A stretch of DNA of 64,000 bases, from NCBI GenBank assembly GCA_044892505.1, contig CM097883.1, forward strand, positions 79,174,001-79,238,000, read 5' to 3'. Below the pieces are notes generated by a model. It did not search any database. It was given only the letters and a program-made list of their open reading frames with translations, and was not told where the DNA came from. Within the stretch, counting starts at the first letter, position 1. Each line of letters begins with the position of its first letter. The position numbers and the translations under genes are program-made. This DNA is from Schmidtea nova. Lineage: Eukaryota. Below, piece after piece: positions 1-60,427 of the stretch.

Positions 1-2621
1 TTGTTGTTGTGATGTAGTGAAGAATTTGATATAACAACACGAAGTCAAACTGCAGTTTATCTACTGGGTCAACCCACTACTGTGCTTTCTACTCTCAGAC
101 GTGCATCAAATGGTGAAGCATTGGGTTTGTTTTTCCATCACCACCTAACCCATGGTCTGCAGACACGACAGGCATCAGCACATGTGATCGAACAGGTGAC
201 TGGAATTTGGAACAAGGCCCGCATACCGACATGTCGCAAAGACCATGCAATCACCAAGCTGGAGCAACTATTCAAAGATTGGACACAGCTAAAAAAGCAC
301 AAAGATCGCAAGACAGAGCTCCATGTTGCCAGAGAAGATGAGTTTTGCGCCAAAATGAAGAATCTTTTTGACATTGCACATGCCGACGCCCTAACGACTA
401 TGAAGATCGAGGAAGATAGAGAATTTCTGCTGGCACAGCGAGAACCAGGACGACGAGGTTACCTTGGATTAGTTGATAGAGCATTAGCTGAAAAGGAAGA
501 GAGAAAAGCAGTCAGAATAAACTTGGAGAGGAAGAGACGTGAAAGAGCAGAAAGCGAGGCATCCGTTAGCACAATGGTTGCAGGATTTGGCAGCAGTAGT
601 GAAGATGACAATAAACCTGAATCGGACACAGATAAGCCTGCTGAGTTCTCATCACCTCGCCGTAAGAAAAGCAGAGCAGCAACAAATGTGATTACCCCAA
701 AGTTAGCAGCTGCCTTGGATCGTACCAAGTTGAGTGACAGAAAGGCTACGTTTGTCATTGCTGCGGCTGCTCAGAGCCTTGGGCATGATATTGATGAACT
801 CAATATAAATCGGAGTTCTATAAAGCGTCACCGCGAGAAATACAGAGCTGAAATGGCAGCTGCATTAAAGGAAGATTTGTCTAGTGATGTTCCTTTGGTG
901 GTACATTGGGATGGCAAACTAATGGTCGATCTCACTGTGAAGGATCACGTTGATCGCCTCCCTATAATTGTGACCGGCTTTGGGGTGTGTCAGCTATTGA
1001 AGGTGAGCAAGATGTCTGGTGGAACAGGTGAGAACCAGTCATCTGCAGTGGTCCAGGCACTGAATGAGTGGAATGTGCAGGATCGTGTGGTAGGATTGTG
1101 CTTTGATACAACTAGTTCCAACACTGGTATCCATAACGGTGCCTGTGTTCTTATAGAACAGAAGCTAGGCAAGGACTTACTACACTTTGCCTGTCGCCAC
1201 CACATTATGGAACTGTTGGCAGGAGCCGCATTTACAGTAAGTCTTGCACCATCATCTGCTCCTGAAGTCCTTCTGTTCAAGAGATTTCAACAAAAGTGGT
1301 CAATCGTCGACCACAGTAACTACCAGACGGGAGCTAATTTGAATGAAATACCTGACGTGGTGAAGAACGAAGTAATGGAATTTGCACACAGGCAGCTGCT
1401 TCGTGACAACGTCCGAGAAGACTACAGAGAATTCATTGAATTATCTATCATATTTCTTGGTGGCTTACCCCATCGTGGGATTCATTTTATGGCACCTGGT
1501 GCAATGCACCATGCGAGATGGATGTCGAAAGTGATCTACTCACTCAAAGTGTGGATGTTTCGCTCACAATTCAAGCTCACATCGTTCGAGGAGAAAGGAC
1601 TTCTCCACATGTGCATCTTTGCAGTGGTTATATACCTCAAGGCCTGGTTCACTGCACCACTGGCTTCCAGTGCGCCTCGAAATGATCTGCAACTGCTTCA
1701 AGATTTGCACAATTACAAGCGTTACAATGAGAAAATCTCTATCGCAACATCCAAAAAACTTGAGCATCATCTTTGGTATTTGTCGGAAGATTTAGTGGGT
1801 CTTGCCTTCTTCGATCCCGATGTACCGGTCGATACAAAACGTCAAATGGTGAAAGCACTGAATTACTGTAGCAAGGATGCCGTCGACAAAGTACTTCTAC
1901 CAAAAGGTCTGAAACGCATCACAATGTCTGCAAGCAGTGCATGCAACTACAGTTTGGAGGATTTCATAACTGTCAGATCTCAGGAATTCTTTGATAAGCT
2001 CCATATTTCTCAAGACTTCTTGAATTACGATCCTGACACTTGGGAAACTCGACAGGAGTACACAGATGGCATGTTGATCGTGTCTAAGCTACTAGTCACC
2101 AATGATAATGCAGAACGTGGAGTTGCCCTTGTTCAGGAGCTAAACAAGTGTATCACATACGATGAGGACCAGTTTCAGTTTCTGCTGCAAGTTGTGGCAG
2201 ACCATCGTCGTCAGTATGCAACCTGTCAGAAGTCGTTATTACATTGACTTAGTTGCGGAATGCGGAGTGCGGACATCGTCTTTGGTTGGACCGACTGACA
2301 CTGACAGTCTAGAACATTTATTCCTATAAATAAATCTTAACAATAGATTCTGTACATTACGGAGTTTCATATTTCCTAGTCATTTAATAACATAATAAAA
2401 CGTTACCAATTTCAGTTTAGTAATAAAAATACTATACTATGCTCAAGTCAAATTTTTTGGTCATTTTAATAAATTGTGAGCTGTTGGGCGACCTCTAAAC
2501 ATTATCTGATCATTAAAAAAATTTGCACAGTATCTTATGGCATCAAATGGAACATTTTAAAAGGGTGGGAGACATCCAATTGTGAGAAAAAAATATTACC
2601 ATTGGTCTAAGGACCACCCTA
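1..2621 (+). mobile_element. hAT-superfamily DNA transposon, hATm-like; 5' end lies outside the window
   Basis: 3' end GGACCACCCTA (reverse complement TAGGGTGGTCC) at 2611-2621 follows a transposase ORF; TAGGGTG termini are what I recall for hATm, so the subgroup is a best guess. Confidence 0.7.
82..2247 (+). CDS. Intact transposase (hATm-like, 721 aa; frame open from nt 13, true start probably upstream or spliced)
   Basis: Motifs VHWDGKL, FDTTSSNTG, CRHH, PGAMHHARWM, NDNAERG; no internal stops. Confidence 0.85.
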   Translation: MLSTLRRASNGEALGLFFHHHLTHGLQTRQASAHVIEQVTGIWNKARIPTCRKDHAITKLEQLFKDWTQLKKHKDRKTELHVAREDEFCAKMKNLFDIAHADALTTMKIEEDREFLLAQREPGRRGYLGLVDRALAEKEERKAVRINLERKRRERAESEASVSTMVAGFGSSSEDDNKPESDTDKPAEFSSPRRKKSRAATNVITPKLAAALDRTKLSDRKATFVIAAAAQSLGHDIDELNINRSSIKRHREKYRAEMAAALKEDLSSDVPLVVHWDGKLMVDLTVKDHVDRLPIIVTGFGVCQLLKVSKMSGGTGENQSSAVVQALNEWNVQDRVVGLCFDTTSSNTGIHNGACVLIEQKLGKDLLHFACRHHIMELLAGAAFTVSLAPSSAPEVLLFKRFQQKWSIVDHSNYQTGANLNEIPDVVKNEVMEFAHRQLLRDNVREDYREFIELSIIFLGGLPHRGIHFMAPGAMHHARWMSKVIYSLKVWMFRSQFKLTSFEEKGLLHMCIFAVVIYLKAWFTAPLASSAPRNDLQLLQDLHNYKRYNEKISIATSKKLEHHLWYLSEDLVGLAFFDPDVPVDTKRQMVKALNYCSKDAVDKVLLPKGLKRITMSASSACNYSLEDFITVRSQEFFDKLHISQDFLNYDPDTWETRQEYTDGMLIVSKLLVTNDNAERGVALVQELNKCITYDEDQFQFLLQVVADHRRQYATCQKSLLH

Positions 2622-23745: not shown

Positions 23746-24805
23746 TCCAGGAACACAAGAACAACCTTTTTAGCTCAAGGAGACAACCAGGGGATTATCA
23801 TCCAATATAAAATGAGTTGGCTGGATCAGGATGAAGATACTTTGAAGGATCGCATGATGGAAATATGGAATAGCAATTCTTTTATTATGAGGGAAATCGA
23901 AGAAGAATCTAGAAAGCTCAATTAACTCTTCAATCACGATGAGGTAGCAACTTCAGCTGATTTCCTCATGTTTTTTTTCTTTTTTTTCCTCTCTTTAGAG
24001 GAATTTATGTCACTGTAGATAACAAGAGGTGGTCTCGAATGTCCGCCGTGACCAACGATCAGATCCCAAGTCTTGCCAACTCAATATCTGCCATGTCGAC
24101 CTCAGTATTAACTGTTAGTCAACATTCGGAAAATCACATTAAGTCTGTAATAAAATATACCATCTGAATCATTCATATTATCGACTATTTTTTATAATAT
24201 TATTCTAGGGAAAAATCCGTTCTCAAAATTCATCAACAAAACAAGCGACAGAACAAGCGACAGAACCCGCCAGAAGAAATTGGCAATCAAGGCTTTGTTC
24301 AAGGATCCTAGTGTAGGAGGAATATGTGGGACTTCTCTGAACAGATTTCTTATTAGAGGATTCCCAGATCCGGTGTCGGAATCATTATCTTGGTGGAAAT
24401 GGATGTATCATAACTCCGACGATAAAGAAGTGAGGGAAATCGCCGTAGGGTGTGAAAAACCTAAATATGGGGAAATCAGTTTGGTTTCATTTTCCAAGTT
24501 ATTGGAAAAACCGACTTTTCTGAACATTCCCAGTTCCATATGTACAGATACCCTGATAAAAGAAGAAATAAAATCAGAGCTGTTCAAAAACAGACGACAT
24601 CAAAAGCACCAGCGTGAGATTCGCCATTCCGCAATCAAGGGACACTACTCCATTGCTTATCAATGCACTGATGAGAATAAAACCTATTTTCCCAAGATTT
24701 TGAGTGTATTTTATGCCAGTTCGTTCATGAAGATTTCAGATGAGATCGTAGGGCTATTCCATAACTCCAAAACCATTAAAAGGGTCTTTTCAAAACACAT
24801 GTCTC
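23731..24805 (+). other. L: Endogenous viral element: rhabdovirus L polymerase RdRp core fragment (stops and frameshifts)
   Basis: FLAQGDNQ (motif C), KLN*LFNHDEVATSADFLMF, PLFRG..KRWSRMSAVTNDQIP, DPSVGGICGTSLNRFLIRGFPDPVSESL, LFHNSKTIKRVF; collinear with VSV L as recalled. Confidence 0.93.
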
Positions 24806-24956
24806 TCAAATTTCTCCATCCGCTTCGTCATCACTCGGAGCTCTACATAGAGGAGCTTCTTTTCCTCTTCCATCTCTGCTACGCGGGCTGTCAGATGCCG
24901 CATGCTCCTGTTCAATCCAGTCAACTGAAGCATCATTTGATCTATCTTGGATTCCA
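24790..24956 (-). other. Coiled-coil-like ORF fragment preceded by a splice acceptor, abutting the right end of the L EVE
   Basis: tgtgttattcag|aaATG then MESKIDQMMLQLTGLNRSMRHLTARVAEMEEEKKLLYVELRVMTKRMEKFE. Confidence 0.4.
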
Positions 24957-26802
24957 TTTCTGAATAACACATACAAATAAATAATAATTTCAGGTCACCT
25001 ACTATCCTCATGCAATTATATTTATCAAGCTTCAACTATTTAATTGGCATCACTACTCAATTCAGGGATCAAGCATTCCTTTAAAAACATATATATTAGG
25101 GGCATTTAATCGCTATTATTTTATCCTATCTAACTATTATTTCCATGATTTTTAATTTCTGGATTTTTATGTTAAAAATTTAATTAAAACTCTATTTATG
25201 TACTAATCTTAATGTCTGTCTTGTATTCTAAATTATTTTTAAAAAATTTGTTAAAATTTTAGCATTTAAATCTTAAATCTTTCGCCGAGGCCTTGACAGC
25301 GGCAACGAGCACTTTTCCCAGAAATTTCGTTGATTTATCCTATATTAAGATTTTAACGGTCGCTATTTTAGTTTTTAAATTTTTTGATATATTTTAAATT
25401 AAGAAATCAAAATTCCGATCGCTTCCCCGTCAAATTTACTCGAGATATTCCGTCAAAAAGGTAAAGCTATATAAATGCAAATGCAAACATCATTAATTTT
25501 GATTAGTGGATTTACAGTATGGAAATTCAATTTCTATATTATAAATATCGATTTGTTTATTTTTAGATTTCAACTGAAATTCCTCAGTACTTCAACAGTT
25601 CGATTAATTTCCAAGAATTTGCCGTAATTTGCTTTATTTTTGTATTTTTGGTAATTTTCATTTGGTTATTTTAGACAACTGAACAGCGTTTTTGGCACCG
25701 AAATAATGAAATTTATTGCGTTTTATGCTCACAATTCTCACTTCAAAACCTTTCGCAAATATTCTGTCTCTCATCAAATCAGTCTCGAGACTCACTGGGA
25801 TCTTTCCATGACTTCTTCCCTAAAATGAAGTGAAATTATTACGGTGATCTTTATGGCCGGTTATCGGTGAAGTACGTGCCAAGGAAATCTCAAATTCAAA
25901 ATATTGCATTGGAAGTTTCACAGCTGTTTCAATCAATTTCATCAGTGCATTTACGTTATTTTTCCCATTCATTTACGGATCTCTGAACAAATATGTTGAT
26001 GGTTTTTCTGTCGAACAATTGTTATGACAAGTTAGCGGTTACATTTTGATAACGCATTTTTGTTTTTGAGTAATTTTATTTTAATACATTTTGATTGTTA
26101 CGACTTTTTGATTTTCGATTAAATCATAATAGGTTAACCCATTGACACACGAAGCCGACGAATCGCCGGTCAACTATATTATGGTATTAAAGCACTAAAC
26201 GCCTGTCTGTCTTTGCATAATCATTTTATGCAATAAAGATCATTGACCACAATTTAATGCAGTAGTAACAGTTCGTTGCATGAGGAAAAATATGCCACCA
26301 ACGTACAGAATAAACGCAAAAAAACCAAAGATTAAAAAAATAGTGGTGGAATGGGTGGAATGGTGGAACCATTGATAATTAGCAAGGTTATTATGAGGAA
26401 AATGCTGTAAATTGGCATTATCTAAAATCTGTGATTGAGATATTAATAGAGTTTATTGTTGGTTTTACTTGTAAATTTTGTAAATGGATTTTATCGATCG
26501 GAATTTAAATAAAATATATTCTATAATTAATATAATTTTATAATGAGACGAATTTTAATTAATACCAATTTTGTACTTTATGCTTGATGAACCAATTTTA
26601 TAGATTGCGAACATAGATGGATAGCTTTTTATGTGGTTACTGTAATCACTATGCGTCTGAGACGAGTGATTAGTTTGCTGGGATCTTAATGAGTGACAGG
26701 TTGAATCCTGTAGGTGATAAAAGTAATCCATATATTATTTTTTATAGTAAATTCATATTAAATTCATAATAAAATTTTTAATTTATAATTTTTCTATACA
26801 TT

Positions 26803-50095: not shown

Positions 50096-50407
50096 AGATG
50101 ACGGTTTTATTTTAAAAAAAACTTTTGAAAAATTTACTTTTATTGTTTTTTATTTATAATAAATAATTTTTAAAAATGCGCTCAATTATTAATTAATTAT
50201 GATAATAAAAATTAATTTAAGTTTACATTGGAAATCTTGCGGCTCTACAGTGTTTTATCATTTCCAAACATGGCTCCACAAAGGGGAGTCCCCATACATA
50301 AAGCTTTGAGCACTCCTGTTTTACATCATAAATTGCTTATATAAATTCCAAAAATTCAATGAAAAATCTATTTTCAATTTAAAATTCATGCATCTGACAG
50401 CTAGTAA

Positions 50408-53356
50408 ATGGTGAGACTTGTATGGATGTTTAAACTATCATTTCTAATTAGTTTAACAATAACCTGTTATTTTATTTATTTCATTCACATCAACTTGCTC
50501 GTTATTCACAATGAAAATCACGATTTTTCTGAAGATCGAAAACATTTATGCAATAATTTATATTGTTCAAAATTCTATCACAATTACGTCAATGTCCATC
50601 TGGTTCCGATGAGCCATTTAGAAAATTCATGGTTGAAAGAACTGGGAGGTCTTTTCAAGTGTAGCGAAATTCACATGAATAAAGTGAATATAAAAACCCT
50701 ATTTAATTCAGTTTATTTAGCTTTGAAATTGAATTCAAGTAGAAGATTCATAATAACAGAAATCAGTTTCTTTCAGCAATGGTACGATGATTTGGACCCT
50801 AACCAAAAGGCCGTGGTGAAGATATTTTTCGACCGTGGCCAATTGCAATTCGTGTCGGGCGGCATTGTGATAAACGATGAGGCGACAACTCACTATTCGT
50901 CCATAATAAATCAAATTTCATTGGGGTTGAAATTTATTAAAATAAATTTTGGATTATGCGCCCGGCCGCTAGTTGGCTGGCAAATCAATCCTTATGGCCA
51001 TTCAAAAGAAATGGCAAATATAATGAAAAAGATGGACTTCAAAGCGGTTTTTCTTAGCCACATTCCGTCGCAATTGTCGAATTTTGAGATGGATTTCCTT
51101 TGGCAGACAAAAGATACCAACGACAGCAATGTCGGCAATTCAATCTTTACTTCAATTATAACAAGCGGTATCGTGGCCCCAAGAACTTTCTGTTTTCATG
51201 GGCATTGTAAAAATAATTTGAAAAGTGCTTCAGAAAGCTTCATCAACTCCGTAATGGAAAGGATTTCCCTACAAAACAACACCAAGCACATTTTAATTCC
51301 ACTGGGCTGTGATTTTCATTTCCAACAAGCACTGGAAACATTCAAAAACTTCGACAAAATCATTGACATTGTCAATTCGAAACAAAAGATCTTTCGAGTG
51401 TTTTACTCAACTCCCGCTTGCTATTTGGAAGGAGTCGCCAATTCCATTAGAACTCTTCAAATCTACAAGAATGACTTTTTTCCATTTGACAAATCACTGA
51501 AAGAGTTTTGGATAGGATTCTATTCTTCGAGACCTAATTTAAAATTATCCATCCGTTTAGCTGAAAGTTACATTCAAACTTGCAAAATGATAACGGCATT
51601 GAGTGACAAGGAGTTTAATAGGAAGCGAATCAAACTTGTTGATGATCTCACGTACTTGTCTGACTTGATTTCGAAGACCCAACATTATGATTACATAACG
51701 GGAAACAATCCAGCACAAATTGTCCAAATGAAAACCAAAGAGCTAAGCGAGGCAATAAAGATCTGCCACGAATTGTCGGCGGCTGGCGTAGAAAGTATAA
51801 TGAAACTGAAATCTGCCAATCGCAAGTCATTGCTCTTCTATGACTGTCCATATCTTGATTTGAGCTTTTGCTCTTTAACTGACAATATCCAGCTGAATAA
51901 AATGGTGAATTTAATTGTTTTCAATCCATTGCCATATCCGTATACAACTTGGATATATTTGCCGGTGAGTCTTGACATTCATCAAACCTACGAGGTGAAG
52001 GACGTCTGGAATACTTTACTACCGATTGATATTGTTCCAATAAATAAACTGATACTAAATAATAAAGATCGGCCATCTAAAAGCAAAGCAAAATATAATA
52101 TTTATTTCAAAGCCCAACTTCCAGAAGCGGGTTACACAGTGTTTTCAATTAGGCGAAAGCGAAAGAATTTCTGGGACTTCAATAAAATATTAGTCTCAAA
52201 ATCCCTGATTCTCGCCCACAAGGTTCACATATCGAATTCTGTAATAAATGTCTCGTTAAATTTAAAAACAAATAAACTCGTGATCAGGACACGAGGTAAG
52301 AAGGTCTCAATGTTTTTAGGAATAAAATGTTACTGTACAAATTTGGACGGGGTTAATGCGTCGTCGGGAGTGTTTGTGTCAGTACTAAAGGATATGTCGA
52401 AAACCATTCACAGTAAACCAACTTCTTACATTTTGGATGGGTCTTTGGTAAAGGAAATTCGCCGAAAGTACAGCAGTGGTATCGGTTTGACAATTAGACT
52501 CTTTGAGGGTCAAGATAATGTTGAAATAGAATGGGTTATCGGCGGAATTGACGAGAACAGTAACTTCAATCGAGAATATGTGTTATCATACAGATCAGAT
52601 ATAACTACCAATAACCAATTTTTCACAGATTCTAATGGTCGACAACTGATTAAACGATTTCTAAAGAGAAATGTCTCAATTGAATCTAATTTCTATCCCA
52701 TCACATCGCATGTATTAGTGAACAATAGTCGCAATGTCGGTCTATTAATTCATACGGATAGAAGCGTTGCGGTCGGTGGCAGGGTACCTAATTCGGTGGA
52801 ACTGCTGATTAATAGAATAATTCTTTCTTTTGATAAAGGAAGTCTCAATAAGCAATTGAAAGATGTCGGGTCAAACCGAAAGATATTAAGTGTCATTGGG
52901 AGAAATTGGATTGAAATCGGCAGTACGAATCATTTGATAATAAATCGAAGATTAAAGTCCAATGAAATATTTAAGAAGCCCATTCTCATGTTCAAAAAGA
53001 ACAATATCGTTGATTTTTATTTGAAAATATTCACTCACATCAAAACCCAACCGAGACATTTGAACATTTTGACTTTGGAACCGATTTTAGAGCCGAACTC
53101 TAATAATGGAATTATTCTACTAAGACTAGAAAATCTAAAAGACATCAGCAGCAACGAAAACTGGAACCGTTTCAACACCGTTCGGGTTGATCTTAAGCAT
53201 TTTTTTGAAAATTTTAACATTTTAGAAGCAATTGAAATGAATTTAGCAGGAGATAAAGAATTAAAAATACTTGACATAAAATTCGGATTTAAGTTTTCAA
53301 TAAAACCAATGGAAATAGTTACGATAAAAATTAAACTTTCTGAGACTACAGATTAA
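50408..53356 (+). CDS. Intronless GH38 (lysosomal class II alpha-mannosidase-like) protein, 982 aa, N-terminal hydrophobic anchor; catalytic residues substituted
   Basis: VHLVPMSHLENSW, FVSGGIVINDEA, WQINPYGHS, LGCDF, YSTPACY, FWIGFYSSRP, QHYD, FFTDSNGRQ, NFYPITS. Confidence 0.92.
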   Translation: MVRLVWMFKLSFLISLTITCYFIYFIHINLLVIHNENHDFSEDRKHLCNNLYCSKFYHNYVNVHLVPMSHLENSWLKELGGLFKCSEIHMNKVNIKTLFNSVYLALKLNSSRRFIITEISFFQQWYDDLDPNQKAVVKIFFDRGQLQFVSGGIVINDEATTHYSSIINQISLGLKFIKINFGLCARPLVGWQINPYGHSKEMANIMKKMDFKAVFLSHIPSQLSNFEMDFLWQTKDTNDSNVGNSIFTSIITSGIVAPRTFCFHGHCKNNLKSASESFINSVMERISLQNNTKHILIPLGCDFHFQQALETFKNFDKIIDIVNSKQKIFRVFYSTPACYLEGVANSIRTLQIYKNDFFPFDKSLKEFWIGFYSSRPNLKLSIRLAESYIQTCKMITALSDKEFNRKRIKLVDDLTYLSDLISKTQHYDYITGNNPAQIVQMKTKELSEAIKICHELSAAGVESIMKLKSANRKSLLFYDCPYLDLSFCSLTDNIQLNKMVNLIVFNPLPYPYTTWIYLPVSLDIHQTYEVKDVWNTLLPIDIVPINKLILNNKDRPSKSKAKYNIYFKAQLPEAGYTVFSIRRKRKNFWDFNKILVSKSLILAHKVHISNSVINVSLNLKTNKLVIRTRGKKVSMFLGIKCYCTNLDGVNASSGVFVSVLKDMSKTIHSKPTSYILDGSLVKEIRRKYSSGIGLTIRLFEGQDNVEIEWVIGGIDENSNFNREYVLSYRSDITTNNQFFTDSNGRQLIKRFLKRNVSIESNFYPITSHVLVNNSRNVGLLIHTDRSVAVGGRVPNSVELLINRIILSFDKGSLNKQLKDVGSNRKILSVIGRNWIEIGSTNHLIINRRLKSNEIFKKPILMFKKNNIVDFYLKIFTHIKTQPRHLNILTLEPILEPNSNNGIILLRLENLKDISSNENWNRFNTVRVDLKHFFENFNILEAIEMNLAGDKELKILDIKFGFKFSIKPMEIVTIKIKLSETTD

Positions 53357-53699
53357 AGTTCATAAAGTTAAGCGGTTGTTTTTAAACGTCTTTCAAATTA
53401 AATTAACTACAAACCGATTTTAATTAAATGATTCTTTTCTTTTTAAAAGAAATCGGTTTTACAACAGTAATAAACGGTAAATCTCTCCCCTAGGCAAACT
53501 TGTGTGACTTATTAAGGAATGGGAAAAAATGTTAAAAGCGTTTATTAGTAGATAATTCTAGATTCATTTTAATTATTTATCATTTTTAATTAATTATGTT
53601 AGCATTTAAACGTTAGAGCAAAACAGACTTGATATGCCTAGAATGATTCTGGCTGGATATATGGATGTCGCCAAGTTTTATTATCAGACAATTCTTTCA

Positions 53700-54498
53700 A
53701 CAGTTTTGACAAAGTTATTTCATCTTTCAGAGAGAGGTAACTTCCCAATTTTACGGCCAATGCCAACTTTCACAAGCTGGCGAGATAATAAAACATCATT
53801 CAATTTGTTCACATACACATTATGGTCCAAGATCACCAAACCATTACCTTTATCATATTTACAAACGTTAATATCTTTTTAGCCAAATTCTTCAAAATTA
53901 AAAAATCCCTAATATTCGGTTTTTTTATTAGAATAATCAGTCGTACTCACATTCAACAAATTCTTTACATAATTATTATCAATATCCTTATCAAACACAC
54001 ACACATATATTAAAGGACAATCTTTCAATTTTTGTGCATAAGTTAATTTTGTCTTTTCGGCTTTTAATACCATGATTGGGACCATATTTTAAAATAGTTT
54101 CCTTATCATTTATCAACACGATTTTGCTCATATTTAAAAGTGTCATTTACATCAAATTTATTAATATAAAACAATATCCTTAAATTATTCAACTTCTTAA
54201 TATGTGAATCATATTTATGCTTTAATTGCAATTTAGAATTATTTTTACACCATTTGATACAATATTGAAAACGAAAATTACAAATTAACTTGAGCAAAAA
54301 CAGATTCCATTACAGTTAATTCACTATCCGAAAACCGCTTCTTATTCTTCTGTGCTTCCAAAGTTCTATGCAACTTTTTCCATGGAATGAACGAATATCT
54401 TCCTTTAGGAGATACTTACTCCATTTCATTTTAAAAATGAAAGAAGAAATCATATTATTCTCTGGACAAGTTTCTACAAAACTGGTATCTCGTTCCAT
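53700..54498 (-). pseudogene. Penelope-like element ORF N-terminal remnant
   Basis: FVETCPENNMIS.FIFK, ETILKYGPNHGI..KIE, KDINVCKYDKGNGLVILDHNVYVNKLNDVL in expected order across frames. Confidence 0.6.
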
Positions 54499-54558
54499 TT
54501 TTTTTAAATTGGAATAAATTTCCTCAGCATTCGTTTGAACACGGACATTTTGAATGTA

Positions 54559-55854
54559 TTCCGGCCTACCAAAAGTCTCCAGTCAGGCAGTTATTTACAT
54601 ATTGCAGTTTATAATGAACGTCTGCAGTGCAGATATGAACAGCAATCGGAACAAAGGTCACCAACACCTTCAACATGCTGCATGCGCACATGTACACACG
54701 CACAGGCACACAGAATATGACTACTCACACCAGACACACAACAGTGATAACAGTGAGTCATGTTATTGAAGGATTGTCACTTTCTTACAATATGACTACT
54801 CACACCAGACATTATTTACAGATGTTACCTTTGTAGAAAAAGTCAAGATGAAACTGCTGCATTGACTGGCCATCCCAAAGGAACTATTAACGACATCCTG
54901 AAGCAGACACATGTCAAAAAGCAACGTTTTGGCCGCCCTAAGCTTCTCAGCATCCGTACGCAACAGCAGCTAAAACAACTTGTGGTGGCTCACCATCGGT
55001 TTCCTTTGTCCACCATTCGTCGCGAATTACATTTTCATGGTTTCTATGGCAGATACTGCGCAAGGAAACCTTTGATTACAGAAATAATTCGTCGTCGTCA
55101 CTTGAAGTGGTGCCGGGAGAGAAGGAGTTAGACAGCAGAACAATGGCGCTCAGACATTTGGAGTTATGAATCACGTTTCATTTTTTTCAAATCTGATGGA
55201 CAGCAATTCTGCTGGCGTTGTGTAGGAGAACGATTTTATCCTGACTGCATTCAGCCAACTATAAAATATGGAGGAGGCTACATCATGTTTTGCAGTCTTT
55301 TCTCAGCTCGTGGAACTGGCCCTCTAGTAAAGTGCAGCAATCACATGACATCAGTGGAATACTGTGCTATTCTGGAAAATGAGCTTGTTTCGTTTCTCCC
55401 AGAAATTGAGGGGCTCATTTTCGAACAGGATATGGCACCAATCCATACGTACTTCGCACATTATGAAGGAATTATTTCTGCAGCACAGCATCAACGTTTT
55501 GGATTGGGTTCCACAAAGCCCTGGTCTGAATCCTATTGAGTTTCTGTTGGACGTCCTTGGTAGACGATTTTGCAAAAGGATTCTCATTGCCCGTAACGCC
55601 TCCCAACTGGAAACACATCTGCTTGAGAAATGGTCACACATCTCCCTTGATTTCATGGCAAAAGTGGTCGATACATTGCCTAAACGAGAGCGCCTTGTTA
55701 TCCAGATGAAAGGTAAAATAACGAAGTACTAACTCTCTCAGCACCACAGACATTCAGTATTCGTGTGTGTTTGTGGCATTTGTTCCTATTGCTGTACATT
55801 ATAAACTGCAATATGTAAATAACTGCCTGACTGTAGACTTTTGGTAGGCCGGGA
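54559..55854 (+). mobile_element. Tc1-like transposon, decayed DD34E transposase (~54850-55732)
   Basis: TA flanks; long TIR T(T/C)CCGGCCTACCAAAAGTCT.CAGTCAGGCAG..; motifs GRPKLLS, ARKP, KYGGG, FEQDMAPIH, LNPIE. Confidence 0.92.
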
Positions 55855-59036: not shown

Positions 59037-60427
59037 TAGGTTTGGCCGGAAAGTATCTGCAGTTAGAAAAAATAATGGCGTTCAAGTTTCTGCAGTCACA
59101 TTGATCAATGAATCTATATTTAACAAAGACAAATAATTTTATGAAGCAAATTAATCATCCATATCATCGAAGAACTCAAAATAGTTTCCACCATGCTGAG
59201 TGCAACGTTGCCAACGTGCAGTGAGCTTTTTAATGACAGCTGCGAAGAAATTTTCGTTTTTATTCTCTATCCACGACTCTAGCTGCACTTGAACATCTTG
59301 TGCGCAGTTGAATGTCTTGCCATGTTGAGCTGATTTGAGTGGGGAGAAGAGGTAGAAGTCTGATGGGGCTAGATCAGGTGAGTAGGGTGGATGTGGTACG
59401 ACGTTGAGATAAAGTTCAGCTAGCTTCGCCTGAGTTAGATGAGCGGTATGTGGCTTAGCATTGTCATGCTGAAGGTAATGGTATTTATCCAACATTCTTC
59501 TGCGCCATTTATTCAGCAAAGCATCCTTCAAATTGTCAAGCAATGAGCAATAATGGTTGGCATTCATTGTTGCACCGCAAGGCAAAACATCCATTAAAAT
59601 GACCCCCTTGCAGTCCCAAAAAATGTTAACAAATGTTTCTTGCTGGCAAGACTACCTCTCACCTCGGTATGTGGTTCGTCACCAGCTCTTCGCCATGATC
59701 GATGATGTTTGCTCACACTTCCATGCCAGTAGACCCAACTTTCATCAATGGTGATCATACGATGCAGGAAATTGTTTTTTCATACATTTCCAGAAGCATT
59801 CTGCACACATCCACTCTTTTTTCCTTTTGTGCGTCCGTTAAGAACTGTGGAATCCACACTGTTGAAAGATATCGCTTTCCCATCTTTAGTAGATAACTTC
59901 ACACTGTCTCTCTTCCAATTTGTAACTCAAAACCAATTTCTCTAACAGGGGCATGATGATTCTCATCAAGAATTGCTTCAATCTGGTCATCTATGTCACA
60001 GGAAGGTCGTCCACTTCGTGCGTTGTCCTTTACTTCGAAATCTTTCGCCTTGAATTTGGCAACCCATTCAAAGCATGTTCGAATACTCACTGTTCCTTCC
60101 CCTGGTGTGTTGTTGATTTCTTTTTCGATGTCTCTGGTTGATAGGCCTCGTTTCCAGCAGTAGTAAATTAGTTTTCTAACGTCTTTGCGATTAAAATCCA
60201 TGATGTTTTCAATTTAAAGCCAAATTCTACATAAACGGAAAAAGACAATATAAACAAATTAAACAGTTTCATTAAAATGACATTGATATTCTTAGATTTT
60301 TTAAATTAAATTTCGTTTATAACATCAAAAATTATCCTTCTTTGTTTCCACAAAATTTGAAATATATGATATGCAAAGATCTTGAATGGCATTAATTTTT
60401 CTAACTGCAGAAACTTTCCGGTCAAAC

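Follow-up and report, generated by a model that had tools for sequence, protein, structure and literature searches.

The alpha-mannosidases of family GH38 include MAN2B1 and MAN2A1, which are central to the turnover of N-glycans and are drug and disease targets. In these enzymes a zinc ion binds the O2 and O3 hydroxyls of mannose. They are retaining enzymes, and an asparagine in place of the nucleophile is unable to form their covalent glycosyl-enzyme intermediate. Glycosidase families other than GH38 are well known to have given rise to pseudoenzymes. This is the case for the GH18 chitinase-like lectins (YKL-40 and the insect IDGFs), which are enzyme folds kept by selection without their catalytic residues; they are secreted or luminal and act by binding. 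Dead enzymes which are under selection often prove to be receptors, regulators or decoys. For GH38 our full-text literature searches gave no description of a natural non-catalytic member, although absence from these searches is no proof of absence. Here we describe a gene found in a stretch of 64,000 nucleotides from Schmidtea nova (assembly GCA_044892505.1, contig CM097883.1, positions 79,174,001–79,238,000 of the forward strand). We will call this whole stretch the window, and all positions refer to it. The gene codes for a GH38 protein, the window protein, which has asparagine at the position of the nucleophile. We consider it likely that it is a selected, expressed and membrane-anchored pseudoenzyme with a non-catalytic function.

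The closest described systems are the lysosomal (class II) enzymes, represented by MAN2B1 (PDB 1o7d) and by the jack-bean enzyme (6b9o). The window protein is similar to them in its architecture of four domains, its length, its cysteines and the aspartate which acts as general acid/base. However, it is only about 23–30% identical to them: the nucleophile has become Asn, Zn ligands have become Glu and Tyr, Arg220 has become His, the equivalents of Y261, Y380, F198 and T452 are changed and the HRR and GGS motifs are lost. It also has a long N-terminal membrane helix instead of the short cleavable signal which is usual in canonical lysosomal alpha-mannosidases (LAM). With Drosophila Golgi mannosidase II (dGMII) it has in common the GH38 fold and a membrane anchor at the N-terminus with type II character, but by sequence it is nearer to the lysosomal subgroup than to the Golgi one. 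Laboratory mutants of dGMII, D204A and D341N (e.g. 3bud, 3czn, 3bup), are described as nucleophile or acid/base mutants, and the window protein resembles those in which the nucleophile is dead. The PDB entries of D204A are described as catalytic-nucleophile mutants, several of them with intact substrates. In those mutants a single residue has been changed and sugars are bound; the window protein has also lost its metal site and most of its subsite. The GH18 chitinase-like lectins belong to another fold and family and have largely kept their sugar groove, whereas in the window protein the subsite for sugar and metal is dismantled.

A first-pass annotation of the window, made from its letters alone, had described an uninterrupted, intronless frame of 982 codons with a hydrophobic N-terminal anchor, which would code for a GH38 protein with a dead active site. 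The frame is indeed open from ATG to TAA. The local DNA has a G+C content of about 33%, in which a frame of this length is impossible by chance. Membership in GH38 is apparent from four Pfam domains, which appear in canonical order and each exceed the curated cut-off (Table 1). An AlphaFold2 model, calculated from an alignment of 77 sequences, has a mean pLDDT of 87.3 and a pTM of 0.90. When it is compared with known structures by Foldseek, the TM score is 0.82–0.86 with jack-bean mannosidase (6b9o/6b9p) and 0.80 with dGMII. All eight of the conserved family cysteine columns are kept.

The motifs of the active site were placed by HMMER alignments to solved structures (the jack-bean, bovine lysosomal and Drosophila Golgi mannosidases). 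The best structure-sequence match is the jack-bean alpha-mannosidase, with E 9e-76 over residues 60–952. The family motif VPHSHDD or VPHSHND reads VPMSHLE in the window protein: His70 is retained, Met68 substitutes for the first His of HxH and Glu72 for a Zn-ligand Asp. WQIDPFGHS has become WQINPYGHS, with Asn194 at the position of the nucleophile. FFGRLDY reads FLSHIPS, which includes His218, and GDDF or GSDF reads GCDF, where the acid/base Asp302 is found. Finally QHHD has changed to QHYD: Tyr427 replaces a His ligand, Asp428 is retained, and nearby an Ala has become Tyr429 and a Thr has become Asn433. Two family motifs of the C-terminal domain are lost, since HRR reads NRI (residues 802–804) and QGGSS reads VAVGG (787–791). 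In this way all the motif changes which had been proposed (N194, Y427, E72, Arg to H218, with D302 kept) fall at the expected positions when aligned with dGMII and MAN2B1, and the model has the fold of the family. As a result, the Zn tetrad His, Asp, Asp, His reads His70, Glu72, Asn194, Tyr427, with three of the four ligands changed.

The published active site of LAM has 12 residues: H72, D74, D196, F198, R220, Y261, D319, Y380, W388, H446, D447 and T452 (PMC2788387). In the same order the window protein has H70, E72, N194, Y196, H218, I255, D302, F360, W368, Y427, D428 and N433. Only 4 of the 12 are retained, as compared with 72 out of 104 other family-invariant columns (Fisher p=0.02). The invariant columns were obtained from 17 canonical sequences of mammals, insects, a mite, a tardigrade and a nematode. 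With asparagine as nucleophile, three of the four Zn ligands and eight of the 12 subsite residues replaced, the mannosidase activity is predicted to be lost.

In order to know how frequent such residues are, we used an alignment of 180 GH38 relatives, collected by a word-indexed search and by HMMER, which was run exhaustively over 1.84 billion cluster representatives. The nucleophile column has 177 filled cells; 173 of them are Asp, and Asn is present solely in the window protein and in P0001. The latter, a model of 584 amino acids known only from UniParc (UPI00060F2FFC), is the one protein among about 15 billion which is closely related to the window protein. Asn194 is therefore neither an accident of alignment nor a common variation. 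The column equivalent to His446 has His in 174 cases and Tyr in four. A comparison of codons indicates that Asp to Asn, His to Tyr and Arg to His each need one G>A or C>T step, which raises the A+T content, while Asp to Glu72 is a single transversion in the third position (GAT or GAC to GAA). Another GH38 relative, P0107 / P0193, derived from Logan, has Glu at the position of the nucleophile (WQMEPWGHS) and shares QHYD with the window protein.

The residues which are left might also form part of a working site. The protein would then still be a glycosidase, or would have acquired a new catalytic activity, with a rebuilt metal site (His70, Glu72, Tyr427 and Asp428) together with Asp302. Such a site could draw on His70, Asp302, Trp368 and Asp428, which are all kept, and on Glu72, which is a conservative change; furthermore P0001 has conserved the changed residues. 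But Asn194 could not form the covalent intermediate, in a column which is almost always Asp, and the equivalents of His446, Tyr261, Tyr380 and Thr452 are lost together with the HRR and GGS motifs of the C-terminal domain. In cattle the change R220H alone, which is the substitution found at residue 218, leaves only 2% of the activity (PMC2788387). We consider a catalytic role improbable.

The first-pass annotation had also suggested that the protein might be a lectin or decoy which binds mannose. It would hold mannose or oligomannose in the old active site. A membrane anchor and a fold of secretory type would be suitable for this purpose, and the D204A nucleophile mutants of dGMII have been crystallised with oligosaccharide substrates (3czn, 3cv5, 3bvu). 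These are laboratory mutants of a single residue, however, unlike the window protein. The suggestion is weakened by the eight of 12 Zn and mannose-subsite residues which are replaced, and the surroundings of the pocket do not show any extra conservation. Canonical recognition of mannose is unlikely because the Zn ligands and most of the residues in contact with the sugar have been replaced, and it is the Zn which holds O2 and O3. There is little chance that the protein is a lectin of this kind. The annotation also named a scaffold and a surface or secreted decoy, and such roles would be speculative.

The relative P0001 gives the best indication of the history of the window protein. It can be aligned without gaps with residues 1–584, with 84% identity and 91 differences. 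At the family-invariant columns it has all 23 derived states of the window protein, one of them as Leu instead of Met; they include M68, E72, N194, Y196, H218 and Y427. Since P0001 carries the same dead-site residues, the losses are older than the split of the two sequences. The 91 differences are conservative, with a mean BLOSUM62 score of +0.70, as compared with −0.37 ± 0.18 (maximum 0.11) under neutrality. The neutral values come from 300 simulations which used the window's own codons and the spectrum of substitutions in the flanking repeats. The simulated sequences acquired 5.6 stop codons on average and the frame stayed open in only 0.7% of the runs. The differences also avoid conserved positions: identity with P0001 is 95.5% in the quartile of positions most conserved in canonical GH38 and 78% in the most variable one (Mann-Whitney p=4e-6). 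As far as protein-level proxies can tell, these values show purifying selection on the lineage of the window protein and P0001.

Searches for further relatives gave no sequences of intermediate similarity. The exhaustive search of the 1.84 billion representatives left the range from 35% to 84% identity empty, and no short-fragment relatives came from a word search whose query was only the N-terminal domain. P0001 has no contig on record, and neither it nor the window protein, when used as the query of a metagenome scan, gave any true match.

The gene appears to be transcribed. Four public runs (X1–X4) hold this stretch, and we placed their contigs on positions 48900–54800. The contigs of X2 and X3 are colinear with the genome, with no mismatches and no gaps, so that the gene has no introns, as had been proposed. 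After position 53371 both runs have 19 non-templated A, where the genome reads GCGGTTG. Thus cleavage takes place after 53371 and the 3' UTR has a length of about 15 nt. Further downstream the depth of X2 and X3 is zero at 53628–54021 and 54219–54415 (X3 has 0.53 at 54022–54218). The other two runs continue straight through the poly(A) site. From the coverage and the poly(A) tail we infer that X2 and X3 are RNA, while X1 and X4 are DNA; the proposed expression is then apparent as unspliced poly(A)+ contigs in two runs. On the 5' side the contigs begin at 50208 in X3 and at 50358 in X2; in the AT-rich sequence at 50208 the assembly may simply have broken off.

In the DNA-like runs X1 and X4 there are thousands of contigs over the flanking repeats, with a summed depth of 1e5. 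In X1 the gene is covered by a single contig, 50291–53705, without any difference and with a depth of about 42. The comparison of the two depths indicates that the locus is single-copy. Across the four runs the only variant in the frame is 50590 C>A, a synonymous change in a third codon position, which carries no information on selection.

At its N-terminus the protein has a hydrophobic segment (residues 4–33), which is its sole membrane-like segment, with a Kyte-Doolittle maximum of 1.89 for 19 residues. AlphaFold predicts a helix in residues 2–36, followed by a linker of low confidence (34–40). The anchor described in the first-pass annotation is thus present, and it is mostly conserved in P0001. 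Its length of about 30 hydrophobic residues suggests a type II signal anchor rather than a cleavable signal peptide. There are seven sequons for N-glycosylation, two of them common to P0001.

From these data the following picture may be drawn. A single-copy intronless gene would give a polyadenylated mRNA and from it a well-folded GH38 protein of full length, which belongs to the lysosomal-type (class II) lineage. The membrane helix and the luminal disulphide cysteines would route the protein into the endoplasmic reticulum and the secretory-endolysosomal system. There it would probably be a type II membrane-anchored protein, with its GH38 body luminal or extracellular. Retaining hydrolysis would have been lost before the split from P0001, and purifying selection would then have maintained the protein for a non-catalytic role. 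Instead of cleaving mannosides it may bind a partner or ligand, either through the former active-site pocket, which is remodelled and rich in tyrosine, or through another surface.

It could also be thought that the gene is a young pseudogene or retrocopy, transcribed and without function, whose frame has not yet been hit. It is intronless and lies in surroundings rich in repeats, where a decayed PolB-type element precedes it and Tc1/mariner fragments follow; the four key replacements are single steps, three of them in the direction of A+T; P0001 stops at residue 584, and the only polymorphism, being synonymous, is uninformative. Yet this possibility has a very small chance of being right, because the protein, with an identity of only about 29% to any canonical GH38, still has a frame of 982 codons open in DNA of 33% G+C, because P0001 has no indel in 584 amino acids and its substitutions are conservative and outside conserved columns, because neutral simulations so seldom keep the frame open, and because all the disulphide cysteines are present in a fold which is predicted with confidence. 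The dead-site residues shared with P0001, the protein-level purifying selection, the polyadenylated transcript and the fold with its cysteines bear out the proposal of a pseudoenzyme.

Several observations weigh against a pseudoenzyme under selection. The loss of activity is predicted from residues, but the protein still has His70, Glu72, Asp302 and Asp428, and a metal could yet be bound by Tyr or Glu. The evidence for selection is at the protein level and comes from one partial homologue, since the model of P0001 ends at residue 584; the exhaustive search of representatives gave no homologue for the C-terminal 398 residues. In the comparison with P0001 the surroundings of the former pocket are no better conserved than the rest of the protein (84% versus 85%), so there is no pointer to the pocket as a functional surface. 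The RNA nature of X2 and X3 is deduced from the contigs: the runs carry no library type and both of them come from one study. Translation is presumed, and there are short upstream open reading frames (ORFs) in the leader, whose presence in the mRNA depends on the start of transcription.

The window protein is about 29% identical to any canonical GH38 sequence, and its best match beyond P0001 is a protein of Echinostoma, a flatworm. In two phylogenetic trees the pair formed by the window protein and P0001 has a stem of 3.4–4.3 substitutions per site and its sister group is left open. The first tree joined the pair to a long nematode branch, which was flagged as a possible artefact. The stem of the pair is longer than any canonical tip, with the exception of the Echinostoma sequence (2.85). 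An extreme acceleration relative to its own lineage was considered and rejected as unproven, since this flatworm sequence is also long-branched.

A group of lepidopteran proteins (P0030, P0108, P0114, P0123 and P0158, from Epargyreus, Bicyclus, Maniola, Cydia and Pectinophora) also has an altered active site. They are labelled 'lysosomal alpha-mannosidase-like' or, in the case of Bicyclus, 'uncharacterized protein'. They keep the nucleophile Asp (WQADTFGHS), while the acid/base Asp has become Arg or Gln, the equivalent of R220 is Pro, a Zn-ligand Asp is Glu and QHHD reads QDH followed by N, S or T. The change of Zn-ligand Asp to Glu and the loss of the R220 equivalent are common to the window protein. 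However these proteins are longer (1046–1914 amino acids), have at most about 31% identity with it and show different losses. They are a candidate for an independent lineage of GH38 pseudoenzymes.

Taken together with the window protein, this lepidopteran group suggests that dead GH38 proteins arise repeatedly. It is conceivable, as a tentative proposal, that we have here the first recognised naturally non-catalytic GH38, in which a membrane-anchored body is kept as a receptor or binding module, with repeated origins in invertebrates, in this species and in Lepidoptera. If this is true, the secretory and endolysosomal system would contain a class of binding proteins, derived from glycosidases, which has so far gone unrecognised. 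A natural case which is expressed, conserved and well folded could show further uses of the GH38 scaffold. The automatic label 'lysosomal alpha-mannosidase-like', both here and in Lepidoptera, is no proof of activity. The significance is moderate, since pseudoenzymes are a well-known phenomenon and no function is yet attached to the window protein.

Table 1. Features of the GH38 gene and of its surroundings (positions in the window).
Feature	Position	Strand	Basis or detail
Coding sequence, 982 codons + TAA	50408..53356	+	ATG to TAA, uninterrupted; start context aaATGg
N-terminal hydrophobic segment, residues 4-33: signal anchor or uncleaved signal	50417..50506	+	hydropathy, AlphaFold helix
GH38 N-terminal (catalytic-barrel) domain, residues 62-360	50591..51487	+	Glyco_hydro_38N PF01074, E 3e-46, 158 bits
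Alpha-mannosidase middle (helical) domain, residues 366-462	51503..51793	+	Alpha-mann_mid PF09261, E 8e-10, 39 bits
GH38 C-terminal domain, residues 670-803 (Pfam match)	52415..52816	+	Glyco_hydro_38C, E 1e-12, 49 bits
GH38 C-terminal beta-sandwich, residues 894-973	53087..53326	+	Glyco_hydro38C2 PF17677, E 2e-6, 28 bits
Glu72 (GAA) for Zn-ligand Asp (bovine Asp74, dGMII Asp92)	50621..50623	+	alignments, codon check
Asn194 (AAT) for catalytic nucleophile and Zn-ligand Asp (bovine Asp196, dGMII Asp204)	50987..50989	+	alignments, codon check
His218 (CAC) for bovine Arg220	51059..51061	+	alignments, codon check
Asp302 (GAT), general acid/base Asp kept (bovine Asp319, dGMII Asp341)	51311..51313	+	invariant column
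Tyr427 (TAT) for Zn-ligand His (bovine His446, dGMII His471)	51686..51688	+	alignments, codon check
Minimum unspliced polyadenylated mRNA	50208..53371	+	X2 contig 50358-53371; X3 contigs 50208-51030 and 51055-53371
ATTAAA poly(A) signal overlapping stop codon	53352..53357	+	14 nt upstream of cleavage site
Upstream ORFs in possible 5' leader	50272..50414	+	ATG 50272 (24 codons), 50360 (7), 50388 (8, overlapping main ATG)
TATATAAA box	50338..50345		upstream of gene
Direct repeat, upstream copy	50185..50204		ATTATTAATTAATTATGATA
Direct repeat, downstream copy	53582..53601		ATTTTTAATTAATTATGTTA
Decayed protein-primed PolB-type (Polinton/Maverick-like) coding fragments	47310..49956	+	directly upstream of gene
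Tc1-like transposase, in pieces	54862..55732	+	downstream of gene
Mos1/mariner-type transposase, split in two ORFs	59151..60201	-	HTH_48 3.5e-10; weak DDE_3 match
227-aa frame, C-terminal part of Mononegavirales L polymerase	24280..24963	+	PF00946, 1.2e-25
721-aa frame	82..2247	+	45% G+C island at window start

The origin of the gene can be considered from its surroundings. The first-pass annotation had called it a retrogene. The absence of introns agrees with this suggestion; on the other hand there is no poly(A) remnant or A-run downstream of the gene, and the only flanking repeat is weak. This direct repeat brackets the gene with 18 of 20 positions matching (ATTATTAATTAATTATGATA and ATTTTTAATTAATTATGTTA), a similarity which is reached by 2% of Markov shuffles. 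An insertion of 3.4 kb could have left it as a target-site duplication, or it could have come about by chance, the sequence being AT-rich. Retroposition or capture of the gene is plausible but unproven. The gene structures of homologues are variable: the cockroach gene spans 62.7 kb, while a LAM gene of a mite is nearly intronless.

The neighbourhood of the gene contains several mobile elements. The PolB-type repeat is very abundant in the genome: in the DNA-like runs the depths of its contigs add up to about 1e5, while the gene has about 42. Two of its fragments have no match in Pfam. The Tc1-like and the Mos1/mariner-type transposases are both broken. A frame in the CG-richer island found at the beginning of the window has no Pfam match either. 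The frame related to the L polymerase of Mononegavirales is an endogenous viral element.

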